DNA from: Caecitellus pseudoparvulus
Lineage: Eukaryota > Protista > Bigyra: Bicosoecida
Assembly: GCA_965644315.1 (NCBI GenBank)
Contig: CBFFRQ010000043.1
Location: forward strand, 496,001 to 560,000
Direction: 5' to 3'
Length of the DNA stretch: 64,000 bases
The notes beneath the pieces are model-generated. The model made no database searches. It was given only the letters and a program-made list of their open reading frames with translations, and was not told where the DNA came from. Made by a program: the position numbers and the translations under genes. Below, in pieces: positions 36,399-50,721 of this stretch. Each line of letters starts with the position of its first letter. Within the stretch, counting starts at the first letter, position 1.

Positions 36399-38432
36399 TC
36401 AAGGCGGTGGACGTGGATAGGCACCGCCGGTGGACTTGAGTACCACGGTGTTGGTAAGCAGGCCAGGTGACTCCTGCCCCATCAGCTTGCTCATGTCCGC
36501 CAAGCACTTCGAGCGGGTCGTCATGGCCCCTGGCTTGGTGAACTGGCCTGATGAATCAGGGGAAATCCGACGGTACGGCGCATCCAGCCACATGCTGGCG
36601 TGGCCGCTCTCGGCTGCAACGACAAAAGCGAAGCCGATGTCGTCACACTGGAACACGCGGTCCACGTATTCCCACAGCTCGTCGTAGTGGGAAGCGTACT
36701 GCACGGCATAATGCACATGGAACAACGAAGCGCCGACCAGGGCAAAGTTGAAAGCTTTCTGCTCTTTGTGCACTGATCCATGGAAGTACGTCCACTGCTG
36801 TGCCTCATCCTGCACGCCTGCACGGGCAATGAAGCCCAGGTGGCGCTGCGGCGAAGCGAGGTGGCTCCACACAGCGTCGCGGACAGCCTCCGCTGCAAAG
36901 AGCATGTCGTCATCCATGAGCATGATACTGGATGTTCGCACGCCTTGCAGGAGGTACTGCGGACTGAATCTGTTTTTCCAAGCGTTGCGCTCAGCCACGA
37001 TGGATGTGATCGGCTTCCAGGCAGGGCACTCCGGGAAGGCAGTCACAGGCAAGGGCGGGGAGTCCACATCATTGGAAATTATGAGCACTCCAAGCACTTC
37101 AGGGAGAGAGCAATATCGCTGTACCATTCGTGCCACCAGTTTGGGGCGCTTGTACGTCATAGTGACCAGCGTCACGCCTTGTCCCAGAGCAAGGCGCACC
37201 TTCTGTTCAGCTTCGGAGGGCGCCAGTGCCTCCTCCCCCGCATGGGGAGTCAACGGCAGAGGGCCAACTGGGCTAGCAAATAATGAAACCCCATCGGACA
37301 CCTGTGGCTTGTTCTCAGTCGCGGCTAGTAGGCAAGCAGCATGCTTTGGCAGCAGCTGTGCGCCCCACACGTCTTGGAGTTGGCGGGACATGAGAGCCGC
37401 ATCCGACAGAACACTCACCCCCGCCAATGGCCGCACAGCAGCTTTGTTTTCCAGCATTCGCTCCACCCAGCTCGTTCTCCAGCTGTGCGGTGGCACATGC
37501 CGGGAATCTGGGAGCCGCCAACCTGTTCTCGCGATGAGGGGCAGCTGGGACAGTATCGAAGCGTTGTTCAGGCACGCCTGCGGGGCCTCAGCAACGCCCT
37601 GTATAGCTGGAGCTCCCTCGCTTATGCGATGTCCGACGGCAAACATCTGTTTGTGGTCGCTGGCGCGCTTGGCCCCTGCAAGCGAGCTCTTTTCCTGGGC
37701 GGGCAGGGCCTTCAGCAGGGCTTGCTCAGCGACGCCATGAGTTTGATCAGGGCGGCTCAGAGAAGGAAGTGACAGCACCCATGCTGCCCTTGACGTACTC
37801 TGCACGACCTCGTGCAGGAACGCTCCTGGGTACAACTCCGTGTGCTCCGCCCAGCCAGCACGAACCATGTGAACGTCTACATGTCGTGCAGCGGCTGGAT
37901 GGGATGTCAGGACGTGCTTGAGCCTGAGAAGAGACCAGTCACTGGTATCTGCAAGAGCAACCCACGTAGCTGGTCCACCCCACGAAGCTACCGTCCGCAT
38001 GACCCGCTCTGCATCTGACAGCTTGCTGTGGATGCCTAGCCGGAGCTTTGCTTCACCGCCACCGCTACAATGGACGTCTCGCACCAAATGCACGACAAGT
38101 TCACGATTTCCCACAGAAATCAGGTGAAGGGATTCGTTTTCTGCCTTGTTGCGTCCCACAGGGACGAAGGGCTGATTCCCTGGTGCGCATCTCCATGCCT
38201 CCTTCACCGGAGATGCATCCGTCAGATCGCGACAAGGCGCTTGAAGGCTGCCGCGCAGGCGGGCTGAAGAAAGAAGCCCCGTGCTAACAAGAGTCATTGC
38301 CCCGAGGAGAAAAGCGCCAAGGGCGATACTGGGCGACGATAGGAGGCTTCGGGTTCGTGGTGAACACCCAATTCCGCAGAGAGGCTGGAGTTTTCTCCAC
38401 CTCCAGCACCACGCCCGGGGAGAGTTCAGCAT
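36399..38432 (-). CDS. Type II membrane glycosyltransferase A: degenerate GT49-like domain plus intact GT64 (EXTL2/EXT C-terminal-like) domain
   Basis: N-terminal TM helix. GT64 motifs TLVTMTYKR, NRFSP, IMLMDDD, PQRHLGFIAR, FNFALVGASLFH, YVDRVFQCDDI, RSKCL. Upstream GT49-like remnant WGGPATWV...LYPGAFLHEV...WVLSLPS. Confidence 0.8.
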   Translation of the reverse strand: MLNSPRAWCWRWRKLQPLCGIGCSPRTRSLLSSPSIALGAFLLGAMTLVSTGLLSSARLRGSLQAPCRDLTDASPVKEAWRCAPGNQPFVPVGRNKAENESLHLISVGNRELVVHLVRDVHCSGGGEAKLRLGIHSKLSDAERVMRTVASWGGPATWVALADTSDWSLLRLKHVLTSHPAAARHVDVHMVRAGWAEHTELYPGAFLHEVVQSTSRAAWVLSLPSLSRPDQTHGVAEQALLKALPAQEKSSLAGAKRASDHKQMFAVGHRISEGAPAIQGVAEAPQACLNNASILSQLPLIARTGWRLPDSRHVPPHSWRTSWVERMLENKAAVRPLAGVSVLSDAALMSRQLQDVWGAQLLPKHAACLLAATENKPQVSDGVSLFASPVGPLPLTPHAGEEALAPSEAEQKVRLALGQGVTLVTMTYKRPKLVARMVQRYCSLPEVLGVLIISNDVDSPPLPVTAFPECPAWKPITSIVAERNAWKNRFSPQYLLQGVRTSSIMLMDDDMLFAAEAVRDAVWSHLASPQRHLGFIARAGVQDEAQQWTYFHGSVHKEQKAFNFALVGASLFHVHYAVQYASHYDELWEYVDRVFQCDDIGFAFVVAAESGHASMWLDAPYRRISPDSSGQFTKPGAMTTRSKCLADMSKLMGQESPGLLTNTVVLKSTGGAYPRPPP

Positions 38433-38702
38433 GGCGGGTTAAAGAAGGTAAACAGAACAGTCTTCCGAATAGCTGAGCACCCCCCGCTGTTTCCTCCCAT
38501 GCGGATGCTTGCCTTGTTGGAAGGTGTGCAAGGTGCGCTGCGCAGAGCAGTTACTCAAAAACCTGAGTCAACACAAGCAGGAGCTGGTGCAGAGCAGCCA
38601 GGCAGTCCAGCAAGCGAGACAGAGACACGCTTGTTTGCACCCCTCATTCATTGACTGAATTGAGCACACGCACATTGACGATTTTGCTGAGAAGCAAGTG
38701 GC

Positions 38703-41700
38703 TCAAGCCGCTTCACTGGCCTTCTGGAGCACCACAACCGTGAAGGCTGCAGCATCAAGGAGGCTGAAGTGCGACCTAGACTCCTTCACAGCCATGCCCT
38801 GGGGGCCACTCTGGAGAACCTGGAGCAGGGCAGAGCCTGACTGTATGAAGGAGCGCGGGGACGACGGGTCCTCACTCGAGCGCTTGTGTGTTGAGGGGTT
38901 CTCCACACACTCGAGCAGGTCGGCAAGGTCCTCAGGCCTGACAGCAGCGCTGGAACCAGAAGTTTCTGGAAGAAGAGGAAGGGAGGAAACAAGAATGCCC
39001 CCCGGGGCGATGCTGCCCAGAACCTGCGCCAGAACGGTGCAGTGCAGCGACCCCGCGGTGTCGCCCCACATGAAGGTGCCGACCCTCACAGACGCGAGAG
39101 AGGGAGGCACCTGCACGAGCTCCTCTGAAGGCGCGGACAGTGCCTGCTTTGACGCCTGCCCGTGGCCAGAGCGGAGCCGCGGGGTGCCTGCCGAGCCACG
39201 GTCAAGCTGCGGGGGTAACGTGGCCACAGGGCGCTCGAGTTGGGCAGACCAGCCCAGACCCCCCCAACCTACGGCATCCACATCAAATACCCTCACAGCT
39301 TGGACCTGTGAGGGTTGTTCTTTAGCATGTGAGCCGCCTAGGACAGGCAGGAGCAGGCGCAGGCGCTGTGCCAACATGCCACCGCTGACGCTGGCACTGG
39401 CAGACGTTTGGGGCGTGCCAAGCGACGCTCCGCGCGAAAACACTGCGATCTCCACGCCACCCATGACGTTGGGGGTGGTGGATGCCATGGACGCAAAAAG
39501 GGCGTCTTGAGCCGCCACCAGCACGGCCCAAGACCGCTCCTCCAAATCCAGCGAGTCCGTTGCATGAGCAAGAGAAGCCAGGTTTGGCGGCCGCGCAGAC
39601 AACAACGCCACGCTGTCCACCCACCTCTGGGAGTCGGCAGGCAGCTGGCGGGCCGTCTCAGGGTGTTCCACCAACCCGGGCATGTAGCCACATGCCCGCA
39701 GCACATCTGTGTTGAGGCTGGTGTTGGCAGGCAGGGTGGGAGGCGGGCCCCACACCACGCCGGGGCCTGCCACAGTTGCTGCAACAGCAGGGTGCAGGGG
39801 CAACGCAGCGAAGGTCTTGCCCCGGGTGAGCAGGAAGGAGTTTGCGGGGCCCAGGGGAGACCAGAGCCCGCGCCCTGCAGCCAGCATGGCGCATGTCGAG
39901 ATGGCGGTCAATGGCACGGCCGGGTGAGTCCAGCTGGTGTAGGCAGTGAGTCCACCAACTGCCCTCGCGGCAGCCGCGGCGAAGGGCGGCAGCAGCCGCT
40001 GGCTGTGTGTGTGGGACACAGGGGCCACCCCCGTCGAGGTGCCAGGCGGCAGGAAGCCGGGTGCCACAGCTCGCAAGAGAGACGTCAGCTGGTGTCCTGC
40101 CAGCTGCCCCCTGGAGAAGTGGGCACACAGGGGGGGGACACACAGGGGGGCAGTGGCCTGGGTTGGCAGGGCTGTCTGGGCCTGGACGAGCCAGGCGGGG
40201 GCTTGGGGAGCGTGGGTGATCCACGTTGTGGTTTGAATCACCCGCGTCTGCACAGCTGCGCCAGCGCTGATGGACTGGCGCCAGATGGTGTCCTCTGCCG
40301 GCACGGGCAGCTGGAGGAGCCAGTCTGTGGGGTGTGCAAGCACCACCAGCGGCACGCCTTGGCGAGATGCGGCGACAGACAGCCACACGTCGGCCATGTT
40401 GGGCGCCAAGAAGTCATCCAGGGAGATGCTCAGGACGGGGGGTGTCGTGATGCGCATGGCTGCCACGCCGGTGCCGACAGCTTGGACCGGCACGTCCAGG
40501 GGCAGGGAGTCCAGCACCCTGGCATTGAAGACCCTGGCGGTGCGGTAGGGGCCAGGTGTGCGTCGGAACGTTCCACCGTGCATGGAGGTGACGGCAGTCC
40601 CACCGTACCGCAGTTGCCCGTACAGACTGCGCCTTGCATAGTTCGGCGCGTACCAGACGTCGTCATCTGCAGTGAAGTACCACGATTCTTGAGAGGCACT
40701 GCCCAGCCCATAGAACTTCCCGGCGTCGCCCAGGTCTCCGTGTGGCGTGCTGGAGTCCAAGACCGGGTGCAGCCACGCTGCTCCCTGCAAGAACCGTGGC
40801 ACGGCACCATAGCCATTCAAGTACACAGTCAGTTGGTCCACTTGGCCAGCCAGGGATGCCACTGCATGTTTGAGCTGCCCCACCCGGCGAGGCTGCGACG
40901 CCATGCCAACATGGATGGGGCCGGCCGCGGCGCCACACAGCACGGCGGCGGCCGTGCCGTCCACAAACGGCTGTGAGGCGAGCTGCTGCTCGACAGATCG
41001 TGTGACAGCAACCTGCAGAGTCTGGGGTGGAAGGTGCTGCACTGCGCACACCAAAGCAGCATCCAGGGGAGGGCGTACCACAGGCAGGCCGGCGATTTGA
41101 GACTGACGGCGAAGGTTGGTGTACGTGACTTTGGCCTGGTCTGGGCCGACCCCCGGACCACCTGTCATGCGGGGGGGGTACTGGAATCCACATGCCTCGC
41201 CGAACCGCCGGCCCAGCACAAACCCGCCGTGCCGTGCGAGCAAGTCCCAGTCCTCCTGCACAGCGGCGGGGGATACCTCCATGCTCGGTAGCCCTGGAGG
41301 GGAAAGGAGGGACCTTGCAGAGCTTGGGATGCCCGCAAGCGGCTCAGCAGCCAGAGGCATCACCCCTATCCCCACCTCTGTCCAAGCAGTGCTGTGTATG
41401 CTGCCTGCTGGGCTGCGGATGTGGCTGGGGCGAACCGCCTGCTGAGCCTTCGCTTGCGCCAGCAACCACGAATCCCTAGCTCTGGAGAGGAAAATGTCAG
41501 CAGGGCGTACGAGGTCTGGCACGACTACCAAAGCTGCAGCTGACTCCTCCACCTCCAGTGCTTGCATGGCTGCATGCAGCGCCCAGGCTGCTGCAGACAC
41601 AGAGGGAGCCGCACCGCCCGCCCCGCCCGCTCCGGCGCTTGCAGGCTCGCGAGCGAGCTCGGGGGCACAGATGTAACCCCATCCCAGAGATCGCACCCAC

Positions 41701-42575
41701 TCCCCGACGCGGTCTGCCTTGTGGGAGTCCAGGAGGGCTGCCAGCTGCTCCAAGCCACTGACGGTTCCATGCGAGGCGTGGTCAGGTCGCTGCGGCACGG
41801 CAGGCTCTTTGCACGCAGCTGAACGCGGCTGTGCCACCGTATCCAGCACCGTAACTGAATGTATGGTGTGCGGGGAGTACAGCACTTCTGCCTCAACATC
41901 CCTCAACAGGCGAACAGTGGTGTCAGGGTCACGCTGGGTGCGCACAACGACGAGCGAAACGCCCCATGCACCCTCCGCTGCCGCCACCAGGCTGCGCTGC
42001 CTTGCAATGTGCTCATGCACTCGCTGAGAGAAGTCGCCCAGGTGGGCATACTGCCAAGCACTCTGCTCCGCCATGGCCTGCTCGTAAGCCACGACAGGGG
42101 TGGCGTGCAGCGTGTCGCCGGGCTGCACTGCCCACCCAAATGATGTGACAATCACTGCTCTGACCAAGTCCTGCACGGCTCCGCCAACAGCAATGTCCAG
42201 AAGTATTAGCACAATGGCGAAGAAGGCGCATGGCACCGCCACTTTCTGCCACGTCCGCTTCCCAGGACCCCGTGGCTGGCGCAAAGTGCTGCCTCGACTG
42301 CCGGCACCAAGCTCAGGGCTGCTTGCAGGAGCCGGACCCGGCCGCCCCCGATACCGCATGTGACCATGTTGCATGCACGTGTGTGCACCAGGGCCTTCCA
42401 TCAGCCGCGCAGTGTGTTGCGGGACTGCGGCGTGGGTGAAAGTGCTGATGGACGGGCGGGGCCGAATTCCGCAAGCATGTCCCCGCGCCCCCGGGTGGCT
42501 GCAGAAGGTCGCCGGACACCGTGCGGGAGAGAGGCCTTGGTGTGGAGAATGGCAAGGGGGCTGCTTGTCATCCAT
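38703..42575 (-). CDS. Type II membrane multidomain glycosyltransferase C with KfiA/PmHS-type GT45 domain; true start may be 42359
   Basis: TM helix VAVPCAFFAIVLILLDIAV. GT45 block at about 40916-40279: MASQPRR, SLAGQVDQLTVYLNGY, DLGDAGKF, YFTADDDVWYAPNY, SMHG, VGTG, SLDDFLAPNMADVWLS, DWL. Confidence 0.8.
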   Translation of the reverse strand: MDDKQPPCHSPHQGLSPARCPATFCSHPGARGHACGIRPRPSISTFTHAAVPQHTARLMEGPGAHTCMQHGHMRYRGRPGPAPASSPELGAGSRGSTLRQPRGPGKRTWQKVAVPCAFFAIVLILLDIAVGGAVQDLVRAVIVTSFGWAVQPGDTLHATPVVAYEQAMAEQSAWQYAHLGDFSQRVHEHIARQRSLVAAAEGAWGVSLVVVRTQRDPDTTVRLLRDVEAEVLYSPHTIHSVTVLDTVAQPRSAACKEPAVPQRPDHASHGTVSGLEQLAALLDSHKADRVGEWVRSLGWGYICAPELAREPASAGAGGAGGAAPSVSAAAWALHAAMQALEVEESAAALVVVPDLVRPADIFLSRARDSWLLAQAKAQQAVRPSHIRSPAGSIHSTAWTEVGIGVMPLAAEPLAGIPSSARSLLSPPGLPSMEVSPAAVQEDWDLLARHGGFVLGRRFGEACGFQYPPRMTGGPGVGPDQAKVTYTNLRRQSQIAGLPVVRPPLDAALVCAVQHLPPQTLQVAVTRSVEQQLASQPFVDGTAAAVLCGAAAGPIHVGMASQPRRVGQLKHAVASLAGQVDQLTVYLNGYGAVPRFLQGAAWLHPVLDSSTPHGDLGDAGKFYGLGSASQESWYFTADDDVWYAPNYARRSLYGQLRYGGTAVTSMHGGTFRRTPGPYRTARVFNARVLDSLPLDVPVQAVGTGVAAMRITTPPVLSISLDDFLAPNMADVWLSVAASRQGVPLVVLAHPTDWLLQLPVPAEDTIWRQSISAGAAVQTRVIQTTTWITHAPQAPAWLVQAQTALPTQATAPLCVPPLCAHFSRGQLAGHQLTSLLRAVAPGFLPPGTSTGVAPVSHTHSQRLLPPFAAAAARAVGGLTAYTSWTHPAVPLTAISTCAMLAAGRGLWSPLGPANSFLLTRGKTFAALPLHPAVAATVAGPGVVWGPPPTLPANTSLNTDVLRACGYMPGLVEHPETARQLPADSQRWVDSVALLSARPPNLASLAHATDSLDLEERSWAVLVAAQDALFASMASTTPNVMGGVEIAVFSRGASLGTPQTSASASVSGGMLAQRLRLLLPVLGGSHAKEQPSQVQAVRVFDVDAVGWGGLGWSAQLERPVATLPPQLDRGSAGTPRLRSGHGQASKQALSAPSEELVQVPPSLASVRVGTFMWGDTAGSLHCTVLAQVLGSIAPGGILVSSLPLLPETSGSSAAVRPEDLADLLECVENPSTHKRSSEDPSSPRSFIQSGSALLQVLQSGPQGMAVKESRSHFSLLDAAAFTVVVLQKASEAA

Positions 42576-42921
42576 TGATGAGAATCGTGCCCCGCACGCG
42601 AGAATTTATTGAGGAGTGGCCCATGCTTCCGGGCGCACGTCAGCGACAAGGTTCGTGACGGGCTCCACAACGTTTGCAAGCCGCAGCGCTGTGCCTAGGA
42701 GGTGGAGTTCATGCCACGCGGTGTTTGGAAGATCAAATTCACTAGGTTCAGATTCATGCGCACCCCCAGCTTCCAGCGCTGCTTCATTGAAGTTCCACAG
42801 GCATGGTTGAGCTGCTTTGCCACCACTCACGAAGCCCAGCTGAACCCACATCAAAATGGACAAATTCCACCACGCACTCAACTCACACCCACATGGCACA
42901 CCCAATGTAGCCGCAGGCTTC

Positions 42922-43642
42922 ATGATTCGACGCACACTTTCCCTTGCTGCAGCTGCTGCCAGTGTTATGGGCAGCAGTGCTTCTCGACAGGCAAGCTCCC
43001 ATTCCGCACACACCGTTGCCAAGATGGCGGCCACGAGCGGCTCGGAAGTCAGCAAGCTGGGGTATGACGTCACGCCAATGACGGCAGAGCAGCTGTCAGA
43101 AGCAGCCAAGCAGCTGTCCACAAAGGAGGAGTCCATCGTGCGTGGCATGGCACTTGCAAGCGAAGGAGCGAACCAGAGAACCCATGAAACGCCCGCCACC
43201 CTCACGCGCAGCTGGTGAAGGGAGGCACGGAGCGAGCCTTCACCGGAGAGTACTATGACCACAAGGAGGATGGCGTGTACGTCTCCGCCTTGACTGGCTT
43301 GCCGCTCTTTGACTCCAAGACGAAGTTCGTACGTGGCGGCGGTGCTCGCGGAATCCGTGCCCGCTGCACCCCGCCATTGTGGTCTCTGCGCAGGACTCTG
43401 GCTCGGGCTGGCCCAGCTTCACCGCGCCCATTGACGAGAAGCATGTGACAGAGCACAGGGATGTCAGCCACGGCATGGTGCGCACGGAAGTGCGAGACGC
43501 GAAGGCGGGCGAGGCTGGCCACCTGGGGCATGTCTTCGATGACGGCCCTGGCGGCAAGCCTCGCTACTGCATCAACTCAGCAGCGCTGCGCTTCGTCCCT
43601 CGAAAGGAATTCGAAGCCTCCAAGGCGCCCTCCAAGGAGTAG
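42922..43642 (+). CDS. msrB: Peptide methionine-R-sulfoxide reductase MsrB, zinc-free type; 3 exons
   Basis: [54 protein letters not shown]. An upstream [12 protein letters not shown] segment looks like a targeting presequence. Confidence 0.92.
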
Positions 43643-43656
43643 GCAATGCATGCACC

Positions 43657-44200
43657 CTACGCACTCTCCTCAGCGCCGGTGGTGAGGAGGCCTGGCAGAG
43701 CGGCATCGAGGGCTGCAGCGGCTGCTTCCGCATCCCCGTACTCCACAATGGTCATGGCTGGATTGCCAGTGAGCATGGCGGACAGACGCTTGCCTGGTGA
43801 TGGTCGGTACAGGCACAGCACGGGGATGCCCATGGCCTCTGCCTGGCCCAACTCGTACCCCACCCCAAGACTGGGCTGGGTCACCTCCGCCACGACTGCG
43901 GCGCTTTTCCGCAGCCAACACATGTCACGCTTGTAGATGAAGGAGTCACCGCCCTTGGCAACCTGAGGGGAGAGGGGGGGGGGTGTGCCTGGCGCCAACT
44001 ACAGCCTGGGCAGCGCACGCAAGCCACACCTCTCCGCTCTCGGGGATGTCCGGACTGGCAACATGCTCAGTCAACACTTCATACGACGCCTGCAGGTGCT
44101 TCACAATGCTGGCATACAGCTCTGCGTCCTGGCGCCCTCCACGGATGCTGCCGGCGAAGTAAATGGCGAGCTTGCCTGCCGCGGATTTTGAAGCGGCCAT
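43657..44200 (-). CDS. DNPH1: 2'-deoxynucleoside 5'-phosphate N-hydrolase (DNPH1/Rcl)
   Basis: IYFAGSIRGGR, VLTEHVA, IYKRDMCWL, VVAEVTQPSLGVGYELG, LSAMLTG. Intron at 44029-43963. Confidence 0.92.
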
Positions 44201-44573
44201 GGTGTCGTCGAGAGGCTTTGGACCTTGCACGGCACAGTGGCGCGATGGAGCGTGATACAATGTGCAGGTGTATCTTAAATGAGTGCGTCCTTTTGTATGA
44301 CAAATTGTGTGGTTTGCGATTGCCTCATTGAAGCATACGGGGTGGCTGCATTGGCGTTGACGCGGCCGACACACGCAGTCCGCATTGCATGCTCCTGGGC
44401 AAAATCCCTGAGACAAGCACATGCAGGCAGACCTATCGTGGTATCCACTGCTGTCTAACGCTACGCACGCAACCCCCGCCTCGGCACGAGTGGCCTCTGC
44501 ACAGCTGGCCTCTCCTGCCACCAGGCGTTCCTCCTCCACCTGCGACTCCAGCCTTCCGGGCACCACGTTGACC

Positions 44574-45116
44574 ATGGCAGCTCCTCCGGGATATGTGCGC
44601 CCTGACTATGCTCAATCTGCGCCTGGAGCTGCGCCCGTCACCGCAGGCGCCGGCTCCAGCAAGAAAAAGGACATGAGCAAGGCGGCCATGGCCAAAGCCA
44701 TGCAGATCGCTTGGTCGCCTGGGCGAAGCCTGTTCGGGCTGGTGGTCATGATGTTCATGATTGGGAACCGCCTTACCATCTTTTCCATCTTCTTCTTGAT
44801 CCCTGTCTTGACGGGGCCCGTGAACCAGCTCATGAACGTCAATGGCGGTGCGTGGAGTTGCGCCTGCGTTTCGGCGTGCACCCCCGCCACCCCTACGCCC
44901 TCTCTGACCGCAGCCTTCGCCGCTCTGGACGGCATGAACGTGAACTTGCTGCAACCCAAGCTGCTCTATACGGCCCTCAGTGTCGTGGGCCTCGCCATGG
45001 GCATCTACAAGGTGAACAGCATGGGTTTGCTGCCAGTCACGTCGGCAGACTGGGTTACCCTGTTGGAAGCACCACAGCCCACAGAGTTCTCAGTGCACGC
45101 CGTGCCCCTCACCTGA
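44574..45116 (+). CDS. EMC4: ER membrane protein complex subunit 4 (TMEM85)
   Basis: KAMQIAWSP, M.GN.L.IFSI, YKVNSMGLLPVTSADW. In-frame 66-nt intron at 44848-44913. Confidence 0.88.
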   Translation: MAAPPGYVRPDYAQSAPGAAPVTAGAGSSKKKDMSKAAMAKAMQIAWSPGRSLFGLVVMMFMIGNRLTIFSIFFLIPVLTGPVNQLMNVNGGAWSCACVSACTPATPTPSLTAAFAALDGMNVNLLQPKLLYTALSVVGLAMGIYKVNSMGLLPVTSADWVTLLEAPQPTEFSVHAVPLT

Positions 45117-45173
45117 GGTGCAAGGGGAATCCATGCATGACGTGGCTCGGAAATGCACCCGCGCGTCTTGCAT

Positions 45174-46604
45174 TCAGCCCTCTTCCCGGGCCTTCTTGGC
45201 TGGCGGGCTTGTGCCCCCCTCTCCCCTCCCACGTTTGGTGCCGCGCGCCGCCGTCGTCGCCTGCAGCAGGAACGAGCAGGCTGCGTTGTCCACGAAGACG
45301 ATAATATCTCCCACTTGCACCGTCGCCGGCTCGTTCAGGCCCAGCACCAGCGCGCTGCCATCCCCTTTCGCCTGCCCCACGGCCTCCTGCACATCCCGCC
45401 CAGCCATCAGGGACAGGCCTCCCTCACCATCCTCCTTCAACAGGCCCAACGTGATGGCCACTTCCTTGGGCAGCACCGTCAGGCTGTTCTTTCCCACGCG
45501 CGTGAGGGTGAAGGCGCCGCTGGCATCGGGGGGTACCACCAGCTTGGCGTGCACTCGGTGCACCTTCATGGACAGGGCGTCCATGCCTGGCACTCGCGAT
45601 GACAGGTCGCGCCCCAACTGCGCCTCCCCTGCCCCCATCGGCACGCCGACACTGGAACTCACCTGCACCAGCCTGTACCCACCCACCTCTGGCGCTGGCT
45701 CAGGGGCGCCTTCACCAGCTCCCTGCCCACCCGGGCGAGACGCCTGCCGGCTGGAGTCCCCTGCTCCCACGGCAGAGGTCTCCTCTGCAGTGGTGTCCAG
45801 GGGCACCAACTTGGTGGGCGGCAAGGCCAGGGGTGCGCTCTCTTCCTCCTCCTCCTCGCCGGCTCCCCCCCCTGCTTGCACTGCACTTCCCTGCGCAGCC
45901 TCCTCGTGCACAACCCCCCCTGCGTCCACAGCTACACCCCCTTCGTCCTTCACCTGCGCTGCCCTCTCTGCTTGCCCTGCATCTCCCTCGTCGTCATCGT
46001 CCACCACCACGCTCTGGGCGGCTGTGGAGGTGGGTGGCTTGGGCGTCGGGGATGCCAGGATGGGGGCCTGCAGGCCCAGGGACAGGAACGTCTCTCGAAG
46101 GGTGGTGAGCTTGGTCGCCAGTTCTTTCTCTCGCTCCTCGGCAGCGGCGGCCCGCGCACGCTCAGCGGATAGCTTTTGCTCCAGAGAGGCCACCATGGCC
46201 TTGTGCTCCTCCAGCTCAGCCCGCACGCCCGCTTGCGCTGTATCGGCACTCGAAGCAGACGAGGTGGCAATCTTGCACAACGACGCAACTGCCAGTGACA
46301 TGCCCTGCTCCACTTCCTGACTTGCTGCCTGCAAGGCGGCTCGCACAGTTTGCTGCCGCTCGATTTCCGCAGTTGCCCGAGCAAGGGCTTCAGCTGCACC
46401 CTCAGTGCCTGAGCTTGCAGAACTGGGACGAGTAGCTAGGGCTTCCAGCAGTTTGGGAGGCACAGTAGCGGGTGCAGCTCCGCCCGCTGCTGCAGCGGCC
46501 GCCGCGAGCAAGGCCTGCATGGTGGCTGCGCTCAACTGTCGAGCTTGACCTGCGCCACGTGCACGAGATTGCTCCTGGGCTGCCAAAACCTGAAGCGCGA
46601 GCAC
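45174..46604 (-). CDS. Coiled-coil protein with C-terminal FHA-like domain and putative NLS; start uncertain
   Basis: LGR...KVHRVHAKL...LTRVGKN follows FHA motif order. C-terminal GTKRGR...PPAKKAR. Confidence 0.55.
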   Translation of the reverse strand: MLALQVLAAQEQSRARGAGQARQLSAATMQALLAAAAAAAGGAAPATVPPKLLEALATRPSSASSGTEGAAEALARATAEIERQQTVRAALQAASQEVEQGMSLAVASLCKIATSSASSADTAQAGVRAELEEHKAMVASLEQKLSAERARAAAAEEREKELATKLTTLRETFLSLGLQAPILASPTPKPPTSTAAQSVVVDDDDEGDAGQAERAAQVKDEGGVAVDAGGVVHEEAAQGSAVQAGGGAGEEEEEESAPLALPPTKLVPLDTTAEETSAVGAGDSSRQASRPGGQGAGEGAPEPAPEVGGYRLVQVSSSVGVPMGAGEAQLGRDLSSRVPGMDALSMKVHRVHAKLVVPPDASGAFTLTRVGKNSLTVLPKEVAITLGLLKEDGEGGLSLMAGRDVQEAVGQAKGDGSALVLGLNEPATVQVGDIIVFVDNAACSFLLQATTAARGTKRGRGEGGTSPPAKKAREEG

Positions 46605-46731
46605 TCAGAACGGCGCTCACATACAGTCTCTCATACATACGTGGGTGACCACTGCACGCAGCTTTGGGGCACGGTGTTTTGGCTGCCCTGTGGCAGTGTT
46701 CAGAGCCTGTCTGCGGAAATTGCTTGGAGCC

Positions 46732-48090
46732 ATGCTGCAGGCAGGCGTGCGAGCAGCGGCTCTGCGCACCAGAGGCAGCCCCACCCGCCAGGCCCTCTTC
46801 TCATACATGCGTGCATTCAGCACTGCGTCAGCGGGTGCAGGCACCAAGATCCCCATCGCGGGCATCCCACGGGAGGCGCTGCAAGCTGAGCTGGCAACGC
46901 ACTTCGATATCAAGCCAGCCGCCAGCGACGCCATCTTCTCTGCTGTGCACCGGGAGGGCCTGCAGAGTTGGGATGCTTGCTCAGCCGTCGGCTCCACCAA
47001 GGCAGCTGCACTGCACCAGCGATACACGCTGGCCACGCCCCGTGTGCTGGAGCACCAGGTGTCAGGGGATGGCACACAGAAGTGGCTGCTGCAGCTGGCC
47101 GACGGCGCCAGCGTGGAGACGGTGTTCATCCCCGAGACGGCAGCACCCAAGCCCTGCGGCACGGGGGGGCGCAAGGTGGACCGCGGCGTCCTCTGCGTCT
47201 CCTCCCAGGTCGGCTGCTCCCTGTCCTGCTCCTTCTGCCACACGGGCACGCAGCCCCTCCGCCGCAACCTGGCCGCAGCGGACATCGTCGGGCAGCTACG
47301 GGCGGCCAGGCTGTCCCTGGGGGACTACCCCCTGCCCCACGGCCAGGCCAATGTGTCCAACATCGTGTTCATGGGGCAGGGCGAGCCGCTGTACAACTGG
47401 CGCAACGTCTCAGCCGCGACCCGCGTATTCACAGACCGCCGCGGCGGCGCCATCCCCCACAAGCGCTGCACCATCAGTACGTCGGGCGTGGCGCCGCGCA
47501 TGGCAGCCGTGGGGCGGGACCTGGGCATCAACCTGGCCCTGTCCCTGCACGCCACGACCGACGACGTGCGCTCCCGCATCATGGGCATCAACCGCAGCTA
47601 CCCCCTGGCCACGGTGCTGCAAGCCTGCCGGGAGTTCAGGGACTCCAAGGGGGGGGAGGGGGACGCGACACCCGCCTCGCTTGCCGCCCGGCGGGCTGCG
47701 CTGAGGGGGGAGGCGCCGCCCGCGCCGACTGGACCCCGCCGCGGGCGCCGCATCCTGTTCGAGTACATCCTGCTGGAGGGCGTGAACGACAGCGAGCAGG
47801 ATGCGCGGCGCCTGGTGGACATGGTGGGCGAGTTCAACTGCCACGTGAACGTGTTGCCGTTCAACCCCTGGCCCGGCGCTCCGTACGCGTGCCCGGCAGA
47901 CGAGGCGGTGCTGGCCTTCGGCAAGGTGTTGCTGGAGGCGGGGGTGACCACATCCATCCGCTGGCCGCGTGGGCGTGACATCATGGCTGCCTGCGGCCAA
48001 CTGCACTCCGCCCATGAGGGGGGGGACGCTGCGGCGGCGGGGCTGGGGGCTGCCTTGGAGGGGGGCGCGTCCAGCACCCTGCGCAGCTAA
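46732..48090 (+). CDS. rlmN: Radical-SAM RNA methyltransferase RlmN-like, probably organellar
   Basis: SGDGTQKWL, VETVFIP, CVSSQVGCSLSCSFCHTG, VFMGQGEP, ISTSG, LALSLHA, FEYILL.GVND, DIMAACGQL. Arg/Ala-rich N-terminal presequence. Confidence 0.93.
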   Translation: MLQAGVRAAALRTRGSPTRQALFSYMRAFSTASAGAGTKIPIAGIPREALQAELATHFDIKPAASDAIFSAVHREGLQSWDACSAVGSTKAAALHQRYTLATPRVLEHQVSGDGTQKWLLQLADGASVETVFIPETAAPKPCGTGGRKVDRGVLCVSSQVGCSLSCSFCHTGTQPLRRNLAAADIVGQLRAARLSLGDYPLPHGQANVSNIVFMGQGEPLYNWRNVSAATRVFTDRRGGAIPHKRCTISTSGVAPRMAAVGRDLGINLALSLHATTDDVRSRIMGINRSYPLATVLQACREFRDSKGGEGDATPASLAARRAALRGEAPPAPTGPRRGRRILFEYILLEGVNDSEQDARRLVDMVGEFNCHVNVLPFNPWPGAPYACPADEAVLAFGKVLLEAGVTTSIRWPRGRDIMAACGQLHSAHEGGDAAAAGLGAALEGGASSTLRS

Positions 48091-48119
48091 GCCCAGGGCT
48101 GTGTCGGAGCTGGGAGCGC

Positions 48120-50721
48120 TCAGGACCCTGGATCGGGCCCCGTGTCTGGGTGGGGAGAGGGCGTGGCGTGCGGGCGGCCATGCACGGTGAGCTGGCGCCG
48201 GGTGGAGAACAGGGGGACTCCGCGGTGCCACCGAACCAAGGCCTGCACACACTGTCGTAAGTCTGCAGCGGATGCGGGGTAGCCTGGGACTGCGGTGCTG
48301 AGCGTGGAGTTGCCGTGCAGACTGCACAGTGGACTGTGCGTGAGGCGCCACTGGGCTTGCGGGCGAAGGAGAAGCGGAGGCAAGCCGCCCTGCGCCGCTG
48401 CTGCAAAGCTCACAGCCAAGCCCATACACTTGCTAGGCTTGAAACCCATGCCCCTCATCTGCGAGGCAGTCGCGCTCAGGGTGCTGGGGTGGCGTGGTGT
48501 GTGGCAGGCGCGCAGGGCTCACCTCCTCCGTGTACGCTGCGAGCCTCCCCAACCAAGCCGCATGGACCATGGACCCCGACGCATCCACCATGTTGTACGA
48601 AGCGATGGTACTTGCCGTGCCCTCACACTGTGCGCTTGCATGGGGGTTTGTGCGCGTTGGCAGGTGAAGGTGCAGCGCAGAGGTGCCAGTGTGCTGCATC
48701 GGGGAAGCGAGCCAGGTGCTCGCGAGGAGCTTCACCGCGGAAGCCGGCAACTTGTCTGGTCGCCGTAGCAGTAGAACTGCATCGCTTCTGTGGAGGCGAG
48801 GGGGGGGGGGTGTTGCGTTGCGAAGGCTCACAACACTGCGTCAATGCACGGAGCATGCACGATTGAGCTTGTCACAGCGAAATACGCGCAGCACGCACTG
48901 GAGTGGTGGAAGGCCCCGAAAGCTGAAACGGGGCACGCCAGCTTGGGCTTGGTCCACAAAGTGCAATGGCTGACCCAAGGGGCAAGCCTCGACGGCAGGC
49001 TCGATCATCTGCTGCGGACAAGCTGCAACGGCGACGACTTGCGAAATGCTTGGCATGCTGCAGTAGTGCTGAAGCAGGGACCGCATTTCTTGGGAGCGCA
49101 CACACAACTGCAAGACCAGGACCACCCCGCCTGGGGCACGTAGCGCATCTCCAGCGCGGGGCACGGCGGACTGCACGCCGCGCTGCACGCGCCGACCTTC
49201 GACAAGCACTGTCACGGCTGACAGAAACGAGCTCCATGCTGGAAGGCGACGGGCAGACTGCAAGATTTCCTCGTCCAACGCCTGCCATCCGAAGGGGCGG
49301 TACGTCTTCACTCCATAGGTGCCCAGAACATGGGAGGCTGCGCTGTCCCAGGCAGGAATCACGCTCGGCATGTGCGGGCGCTGCCGCCCGACACTCGTCG
49401 GCACATCCACGACGCTAACGTGGGGAAGAACTGTGAAGGAGTACCCTGCAGCAAACAGATGGGCCGTCCATTGGGCTTTGTTCATGCCCCTGTCCACAAA
49501 GGCAGGGTCCGGTGCGGGCGCTGCACGGGGCACAATGAGGTACGGTTCAAAGCTGGGAGCAAACGGCACGGTGAACGCGACACGGCCTCTCTCTGACAGC
49601 CACCGTCGGTAGTTCGCTGGCATGTATGCGCGTGGAAAGTACGGGTGCATGGGCCCAATAGCCCCGCTCGCCACTGCCTGCCAAATCTCGGCGTGCGACG
49701 GCGGTGCCGGTACGCGAGTCACATCCATGGACGCTTCCAGCGCTATGACAACGAAGGCATGCAACCCCTTGCATGGTGCGACGTGTGCATGGGGATTCCT
49801 TGCGCCCGCCAAGAAGTCGTCCATGTCCAGGCCTCGGAAGCCTGGCACGTGAGCCTCCCCCGCCTGCAAGTCTGCCTCAGCTTCAGCCAGTGCAGCGGAA
49901 AAGTGCGCCGCTTCGTGCGTCAGGTGCAAGTCCGCATCGATGACAAGCACCCAGGGCGTCTGTGCCAGCCGTTGGGCAATCGCCCGCATGAGATTGATCG
50001 GGTACACTGCCTCCTGCGCGAGCTCCAGCCCCACCGGCTGCACCAAGTGCAGCGCGAGGGAAGCTGCCGCGCTGCCCCACTTCCCCACAGTGTGTAGGAG
50101 GCGGCGCACGGCGCGCCCTGAGCCGGGCACGAACACCACAGCAGTGACTGGGCCCTTCCAGGTCTCGCACAGTCTCAGCAGGTGCGGCAGCCTTTCAGCA
50201 CTGAGGTGTGTGGCCAACGTGACGTTCCAATGCACGCCAGCCGCACCCGACGCGAATGACACGCCGGGTCCAACGTACACCAGGGGAGACACCACGAAGT
50301 CGGCAGCGTCCCCCGCCTTTTCTACCCATGGCGGCCTGGTGGCAAGCGCTGCCTTTCCGCCGCTCTCCAGCAAGGCCATGAGGAGCGCGGCGCTTGGGGA
50401 GGAAGGCGCGGCTGAGGGGGCATGCACTCCGGCAGCGTCGCATGGTACGAAGCAGCGCGATCGGCCACGGAGGAGAGAGGGGACGCTCCGGGACTCGTCA
50501 CCATATGTGCAGAGAGTGTCATTGTCCGCCTCGCCTGTTTGTCCTCCCTGCGTCCATGTTTGTGTGGTGCCGTCTGCCGTCGACCAGGCGGCGGCAGCCT
50601 CAGCCGATGCACAGGAAGCGGCCAAGCACAGCGCCACCCACAAACCTGCCCAGCAGCGTGGCACGCCGTGGCCACCTTGCTGGCACTGCCCCCTTTGGTG
50701 TTGACGCGCAAGCTGGCACAT
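48120..50721 (-). CDS. Glycosyltransferase B: GT49 (LARGE/B4GAT1-like) domain plus degenerate GT64 domain; 3 exons
   Basis: GT49 motifs VTLATHLSAERL, WKGPV, YPINLMR, VIDAD, FEPYLIV, FVDRGMNK, YSFTVLP. Introns at 48898-48788 and 48522-48459 join three ORF pieces into a complete GT64-shaped C-terminus (RFS...SDAVLLLRRP...SYNMV...KCMGLAVSF...RQCV...GVPLFST). Confidence 0.8.

Follow-up and report, generated by a model that had tools for sequence, protein, structure and literature searches.

Multi-domain glycan synthases of the Golgi can carry dead glycosyltransferase (GT) domains, and several of the closest described systems to the genes discussed here are of this kind. EXT1 and EXT2 form a GT47-GT64 heterodimer, for which accounts of the inactivity of the EXT1 GT64 domain conflict (PMC9675754 versus the summary of PMC13389171). 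CHSY and CHPF form a GT31-GT7 heterodimer of paralogues with partner-stabilising pseudo-domains and interchangeable pairings, and in both pairs, according to PMC13389171, pseudo-domains can be obligatory scaffolds. LARGE1 (GT8-GT49) is a homodimer in which both sites are live. EXTL2, EXTL3 and the plant enzymes GINT1 and GMT1 (GT64) carry out single-step alpha-transfer onto glucuronic acid (GlcA). Here, we describe two genes, A and B, in a window of 64,000 nucleotides (nt) from Caecitellus pseudoparvulus (contig CBFFRQ010000043.1, C43:496001-560000), which lies within a 30.6-Mb, gene-dense genome of a marine eukaryote. An 18S rRNA of 1697 nt and a 42-kb contig bearing a mitochondrial-type SSU rRNA look like those of a stramenopile, probably a bicosoecid. 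Both proteins combine a GT49 with a GT64 domain, and in each of them the other domain is dead at the level of its motifs. Very probably A and B arose from one enzyme by duplication and subfunctionalisation.

A and B resemble EXT1-EXT2 in being multi-domain paralogues that end in a GT64 and whose inactive domains complement each other, and the catalytic residues of the EXT2 GT64 are retained in A. In contrast to the exostosins, in which GT47 stands directly before GT64, A and B have no GT47, GT49 precedes GT64, and GT49 also intervenes in the longer paralogues and in a motif-intact gene on contig L036; where a GT47 is present it resembles plant clusters. Moreover, there are several A- and B-types here, and a heterodimer of them is hypothetical. 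Gene B shares with LARGE1/LARGE2 and B4GAT1 the GT49 fold, the DxD and the YPxN, FEPY and GxNK motifs, and the N-terminal half of A shares the fold. Unlike in LARGE, no member has a GT8 domain (PF01501), GT49 is N-terminal to its partner domain, and LARGE-like proteins branch apart in the tree from a separate GT49 clade (PMH-Y, His705-to-Asp) common to this family, Pigoraptor and ichthyosporeans. CHSY-CHPF is built from other families, with both activities in one chain and none in the other, whereas here each chain has one. EXTL3 also has one dead domain, but this is a GT47 and that of A a GT49. The A/B family stands outside the exostosin and LARGE families, as an apparent variant of multi-domain Golgi glycan synthases with pseudo-domains that is EXT1/EXT2-like in its division of labour. 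In a literature search covering mostly titles and abstracts, no GT49-GT64 or GT49-GT47 fusion was described.

An earlier note on this stretch had proposed that A and B are full-length paralogues with a common anchor-GT49-GT64 layout, A keeping the GT64 motifs and losing the GT49 DxD, B the reverse. Profiles, fold and trees bear out the two domains and the paralogy. Residues 421-654 of A match PF09258 above the cut-off (E 6e-30, 104.7 bits), and EXTL2 (E 1e-12) and EXT2 also align with this GT64. The EXT2 catalytic residues, DxD (D538/D540), acidic pair (E627/D628) and arginine (R673) (PMC9675754), have their counterparts in D507/D509, D597/D598 and R640, and QCDDI (36650-36636), TYKR, N454 and NRF are retained as well. 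A therefore combines the four features of a GT64, namely the PF09258 match, DxD, C-[ED]-D and arginine. Its N-terminal half had no match in Pfam. Against a profile of intact GT49s it scores 96% in hhalign (E 4e-9), in language-model features it resembles ESM Atlas GT49 clusters (0.90), and the top match of its predicted fold is the GlcA-transferase domain of LARGE1 (Z 15.5, root-mean-square deviation 3.2 over 216 residues), a fold that is not fully independent since the folding alignment included GT49s. Profile, language-model features and predicted fold agree that this half derives from a GT49. Besides its DxD, which reads VLSLPS as claimed, it lacks the PMH-Y, FEPY and GxNK motifs. The anchor foreseen for both proteins holds for A (maximal Kyte-Doolittle hydropathy 2.0), but the moderately hydrophobic N-terminus of B (1.62) looks more like a cleavable signal.

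Gene B was tested exon by exon throughout. Exon 1 matches PF13896 (E 3e-28, 99.7 bits) and LARGE1 (E 4e-15), and its GT49 keeps DAD, YPIN, FEPY and GMNK and thus all the hallmarks of the family (PF13896, DxD, FEPY, GxNK). Downstream, three GT64 pieces fall in collinear order on positions 3-60, 88-154 and 174-241 of a profile built from 142 outside GT64s, each above all 500 shuffled controls, and the pooled B-type pieces align with GT64 at 88-97% in hhalign. This domain has lost the DDD (now RRP), the acidic pair (CMGL) and the arginine. Both disulfide cysteines are retained, as in the other dead GT64 copies. Individually the pieces of B score 5-14 bits each and the splicing was predicted from sequence, which would suit a reading in which B ends after GT49 and each dead half is either a remnant in decay or an artefact of the gene model. 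No RNA run contained B, and contigs aligned to it showed no spliced junction. The reading is nevertheless largely refuted by the collinear profile matches, by purifying selection on exons 2 and 3, and by the two GT-AG introns, as the note had placed them, whose position and phase are identical in the paralogues on contigs C89 and C62 and in one relative (four genes); we give it almost no credence. The position of intron 1 recurs in a further species. In the C89 B-type this intron (L016:5134-5208) is 75 nt long and stop-free, and gene callers may read through it; that of the relative measures 67 nt.

The metal site of the B GT49 had been listed as a caveat, since VDVPT stands where LARGE has a histidine-containing motif. 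In an alignment with 7ui6 (our numbering) VDVPT falls on H705 and H708 of LARGE1, and the C-terminal metal-site histidines of LARGE1 are indeed absent from B. Yet the caveat largely dissolves: H705-to-Asp is common to the whole GT49 clade, intact forms included. At the second histidine this lineage has Thr or Asn, and K4CP does without H708, which counts as an "extra" ligand (PMC9746966). Because the position is acidic and conserved, we do not read the change as decay.

Searches of the genome itself returned two A-type and three B-type genes. The second A-type, on C89, is 31% identical to A over 564 residues. The B-types on C89 and C62 are longer, with the order anchor, pseudo-GT64, GT47, GT49, pseudo-GT64, their N-terminal pseudo-GT64 being recognised at 86% in hhalign; gene B has no GT47, as is also the case in another species (L033). 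The contig of a relative carries an orthologue of the C89 B-type (96% identical) and, 0.7 kb further on, a third A-type (P0002) that is not present in this genome. The two types occur together here, in the relative (L026) and in a near strain (L028, L029); the individual sequences from L033 and Pigoraptor showed a B-type alone. The GT49 DxD position is dead in all three A-types (PSL, PSL, PAG), and the GT64 DDD position is degenerate in every B-type seen (RRP, EDN and SQE, with DGG in a further species). An A-type lies near a B-type every time, at about 10 kb in the window, about 24 kb on C89 and 0.7 kb in the relative. The dead GT64 of the B-types is under purifying selection. Between C89 and the relative the ratio of non-synonymous to synonymous change (dN/dS) is 0.06, 0.08 and 0.16 for its three pieces, and for gene B against the strain, a comparison that like the others with the strain rests on small change counts, 8 synonymous stand against 4 non-synonymous changes (p 0.003 versus neutrality). 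The GT64 of A has a dN/dS of 0.09 against the near strain.

Relatives outside the lineage come from a word search and from a profile run against 1.8 billion representatives. Contigs L036 (8249-12026) and L037 (2749-6570) of the Joint Genome Institute (JGI), from a metagenome eukaryote, hold one gene that reads anchor-GT47, GT49, GT64 with every motif intact, in three in-line pieces split by probable introns. A protein attributed to Pigoraptor chileana is a GT49-GT64 with an intact GT49 and a GT64 that has lost DxD but retained CDDI and arginine, and L035 has a GT47-GT49 gene with no GT64. No relatives turned up when metagenome, viral and bacterial/archaeal contigs were scanned by back-translation, which detects only close kin. 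A quick tree search united the GT64s of L036, Pigoraptor, A and the two other A-types (C89 and P0002) in a single clade (Shimodaira-Hasegawa-like approximate likelihood ratio test, SH-aLRT, 94). The A-type pseudo-GT49s group with the B-type GT49s of this lineage (100/99), a placement that involves long branches. The GT47 of the family is nearest to plant GT47 clusters. The GT64 and GT49 groupings point to duplication and complementary degeneration, as had been proposed, and the undivided, motif-intact form agrees with this. The simplest history would start from one fusion, followed in this lineage by duplication and reciprocal loss; in Pigoraptor, GT64 would have decayed separately. A replacement of GT47 by GT49 is not supported, since the intact gene and two of the B-type paralogues have a GT47 that precedes their GT49.

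What A and B make together can be approached from their families. B4GAT1 and LARGE transfer GlcA to xylose (PMC4227051; also PMC9746966), and GT64 enzymes put N-acetylhexosamine (HexNAc) or mannose on GlcA (PMC9675754, PMC9113257). Most likely, judged from sequence, is a relay in which B places GlcA on xylose and A then adds alpha-HexNAc, perhaps within a complex of both types. A separate GT47, or that of the longer B-types, would probably supply the preceding sugar, likely xylose; the B-types would extend it with beta-GlcA, onto which the A-types would transfer alpha-1,4-HexNAc. The domain order GT47, GT49, GT64 matches this reaction order. The product would be a xylose-GlcA-HexNAc unit that serves as primer, cap or repeat, repetition depending on a GT47 that accepts HexNAc. 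If the analogy with EXT1/EXT2 and CHSY/CHPF holds, the fold and the contact surface of a homodimeric ancestor may survive in the dead domains, and A- and B-type chains would probably meet in a complex with several possible pairings. The reciprocal losses, the selection and the linkage speak for a common pathway, in which we would place A and B with fair confidence, but they do not establish a heterodimer; a physical A/B heteromer has, on the same analogy, a probability that falls just short of even. The best overall explanation, which we hold with evenly balanced confidence, is that A and B were subfunctionalised from a secretory-pathway assembly-line enzyme of (GT47-)GT49-GT64 type.

Several observations weigh against this explanation. 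Clustering of GT genes is common throughout this genome, so that linkage of A- and B-types is a weaker argument. The pseudo-GT49 of A is weakly constrained (dN/dS 0.48; 5 synonymous and 7 non-synonymous changes, not significant). GT49s of the same clade occur with no GT64 in L035, Amoebidium and Creolimax, stand-alone in the latter two, and no A-type from outside the lineage is among the best 150 matches listed. Incongruent A-type and B-type trees rule out a strict co-duplication of A/B pairs. Finally, xylose as the GT47 donor is presumed from the resemblance to plant GT47s and from the example of IRX10, a xylosyltransferase.

The note had envisaged an obligate A/B heterodimer that alone polymerises an alternating GlcA-HexNAc chain, which would be heparosan-like. 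The reciprocally dead sites, which recall EXT1/EXT2 as summarised in PMC13389171, the linkage of A and B, a B that may have no anchor of its own, and the absence of GT47 from B here and in L033, by which two activities may suffice, would all fit. So would the anchored 1290-residue protein of gene C between A and B, with its intact GT45 domain of the bacterial heparosan synthase/KfiA type, an alpha-N-acetylglucosamine (GlcNAc) transferase (PmHS2 E 3e-20, KfiA E 1.5e-9). Gene C is also a possible alternative partner for gene B, and with two A-types and three B-types there are several candidates; an exclusive pair is not supported. The N-terminal half of gene C had no match to GT47, GT49 or GT64; a second GT45 gene lies at C42:338663-339304. 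In the intact form, moreover, GT47 stands together with GT49 and GT64. A two-sugar polymer, unlike the relay, requires a change in known acceptor specificity, as both characterised GT49 activities use xylose (PMC4227051) and B would have to accept HexNAc. Engineered, reciprocally dead LARGE1 heterodimers did not polymerise, while a mixture of dead homodimers did (PMC12514197), which shows that such chains may work together unpaired and yet fail as a pair. We consider the two-chain polymerase improbable. A further reading can be put forward tentatively: GT47-GT49-GT64 would be a previously undescribed eukaryotic family of glycan synthases that unites EXT-type and LARGE-type modules in a single chain, and in this protist it would have been split, independently of EXT1/EXT2, into an obligate heteromer of reciprocally dead chains that makes a new glycosaminoglycan (GAG)-like polymer, for instance a xylose-GlcA-HexNAc repeat.

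Alternatively, A- and B-types could be independent single-step enzymes, monomers or homodimers with no A-B contact, the A-types priming or capping with alpha-HexNAc (or mannose) like EXTL2, EXTL3 or GINT1 and the B-types acting like B4GAT1, with the dead domain needed only for folding or acceptor binding. EXTL3 is such a homodimer (PMC9178029), and plant GT64s cap GlcA on glycosylinositol phosphorylceramide lipids (PMC9113257). Pigoraptor shows a separate decay of GT64 and L035 its loss, with no A-type partner seen, and P0002 is missing here though its B-type neighbour persists. This would leave unexplained why reciprocity is strict throughout the family, why A-types repeatedly lie beside B-types and why selection on the dead GT64 of B is strong, and we regard it as rather unlikely. 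The relay, perhaps with contact between the chains, accommodates known acceptors throughout.

Table 1. Positions of genes A, B and C and of their parts in the window
Feature	Position	Strand	Remarks
Gene A (A-type)	36399..38432	minus	single exon/open reading frame, 677 aa: anchor, pseudo-GT49, GT64
Gene A, N-terminal hydrophobic anchor	38286..38327	minus	core aa 36-49
Gene A, pseudo-GT49 domain	37353..38051	minus	VLSLPS at DxD position, 37778-37761
Gene A, GT64 domain	36468..37187	minus	full catalytic set: DDD 36914-36906, CDDI 36647-36636, R640
Gene C	38703..42575	minus	GT45 domain 40922-40266
Gene B, exon 1	48899..50721	minus	signal or anchor, linker, intact GT49 about 50229-49282 (DAD 49938-49930), start of pseudo-GT64 about 49125-48899
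Gene B, intron 1 (predicted)	48788..48898	minus	111 nt, phase 2, GT-AG; paralogues share position
Gene B, exon 2	48523..48787	minus	middle of pseudo-GT64; RRP at DDD position, within 48771-48757
Gene B, intron 2 (predicted)	48459..48522	minus	64 nt, phase 0, GT-AG; paralogues share position
Gene B, exon 3	48120..48458	minus	end of pseudo-GT64; CEDI changed to CMGL (48428-48417); no catalytic Arg, but both structural Cys present

Further GT genes were seen elsewhere in the genome. About 25-87 kb of C89 (L016, L019, L021, L024, L025) form a GT-rich island with GT64-GT2, STELLO-like, A-type and B-type genes and a GT11-like inverted duplicate, and synteny with the relative breaks just past the B-type gene. 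The C89 A-type (L021:6505-7620) shares a domain of about 290 residues (80% identity) with an 815-residue orphan (L016:6433-8877, minus strand); the domain has no Pfam, GT47, GT49 or GT64 match, and a profile comparison gave no support for reading this extra N-terminal domain as a pseudo-GT47. Three polyproteins have the order GT64-GT2-discoidin-GT2 (L018:366-5150, L019:505-5034, L020:4951-9492). A Sphaeroforma arctica record (P0006) is a similar long GT64-first protein, so two GT architectures are shared by this stramenopile-like genome and unicellular holozoans. On C56, a tandem pair of divergent GT64 genes (L022:3957-7579, minus strand) is 80% identical and long-branched.

The heterodimeric GAG polymerases of animals are thought to have arisen by fusion, duplication and loss of sites, a route reconstructed from its end states. 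In the present case there are sequences for the intact single-chain form as well as for the two complementary descendants, which makes this route directly testable. The GT47-GT49-GT64 architecture joins the enzyme families of heparan sulfate and of matriglycan, and the L036-type gene with its intact motifs is the best candidate for direct biochemistry. The architecture is found in unicellular eukaryotes, among them the filasterean Pigoraptor by a protein attributed to it, and leads one to expect a novel acidic glycan at the cell surface.

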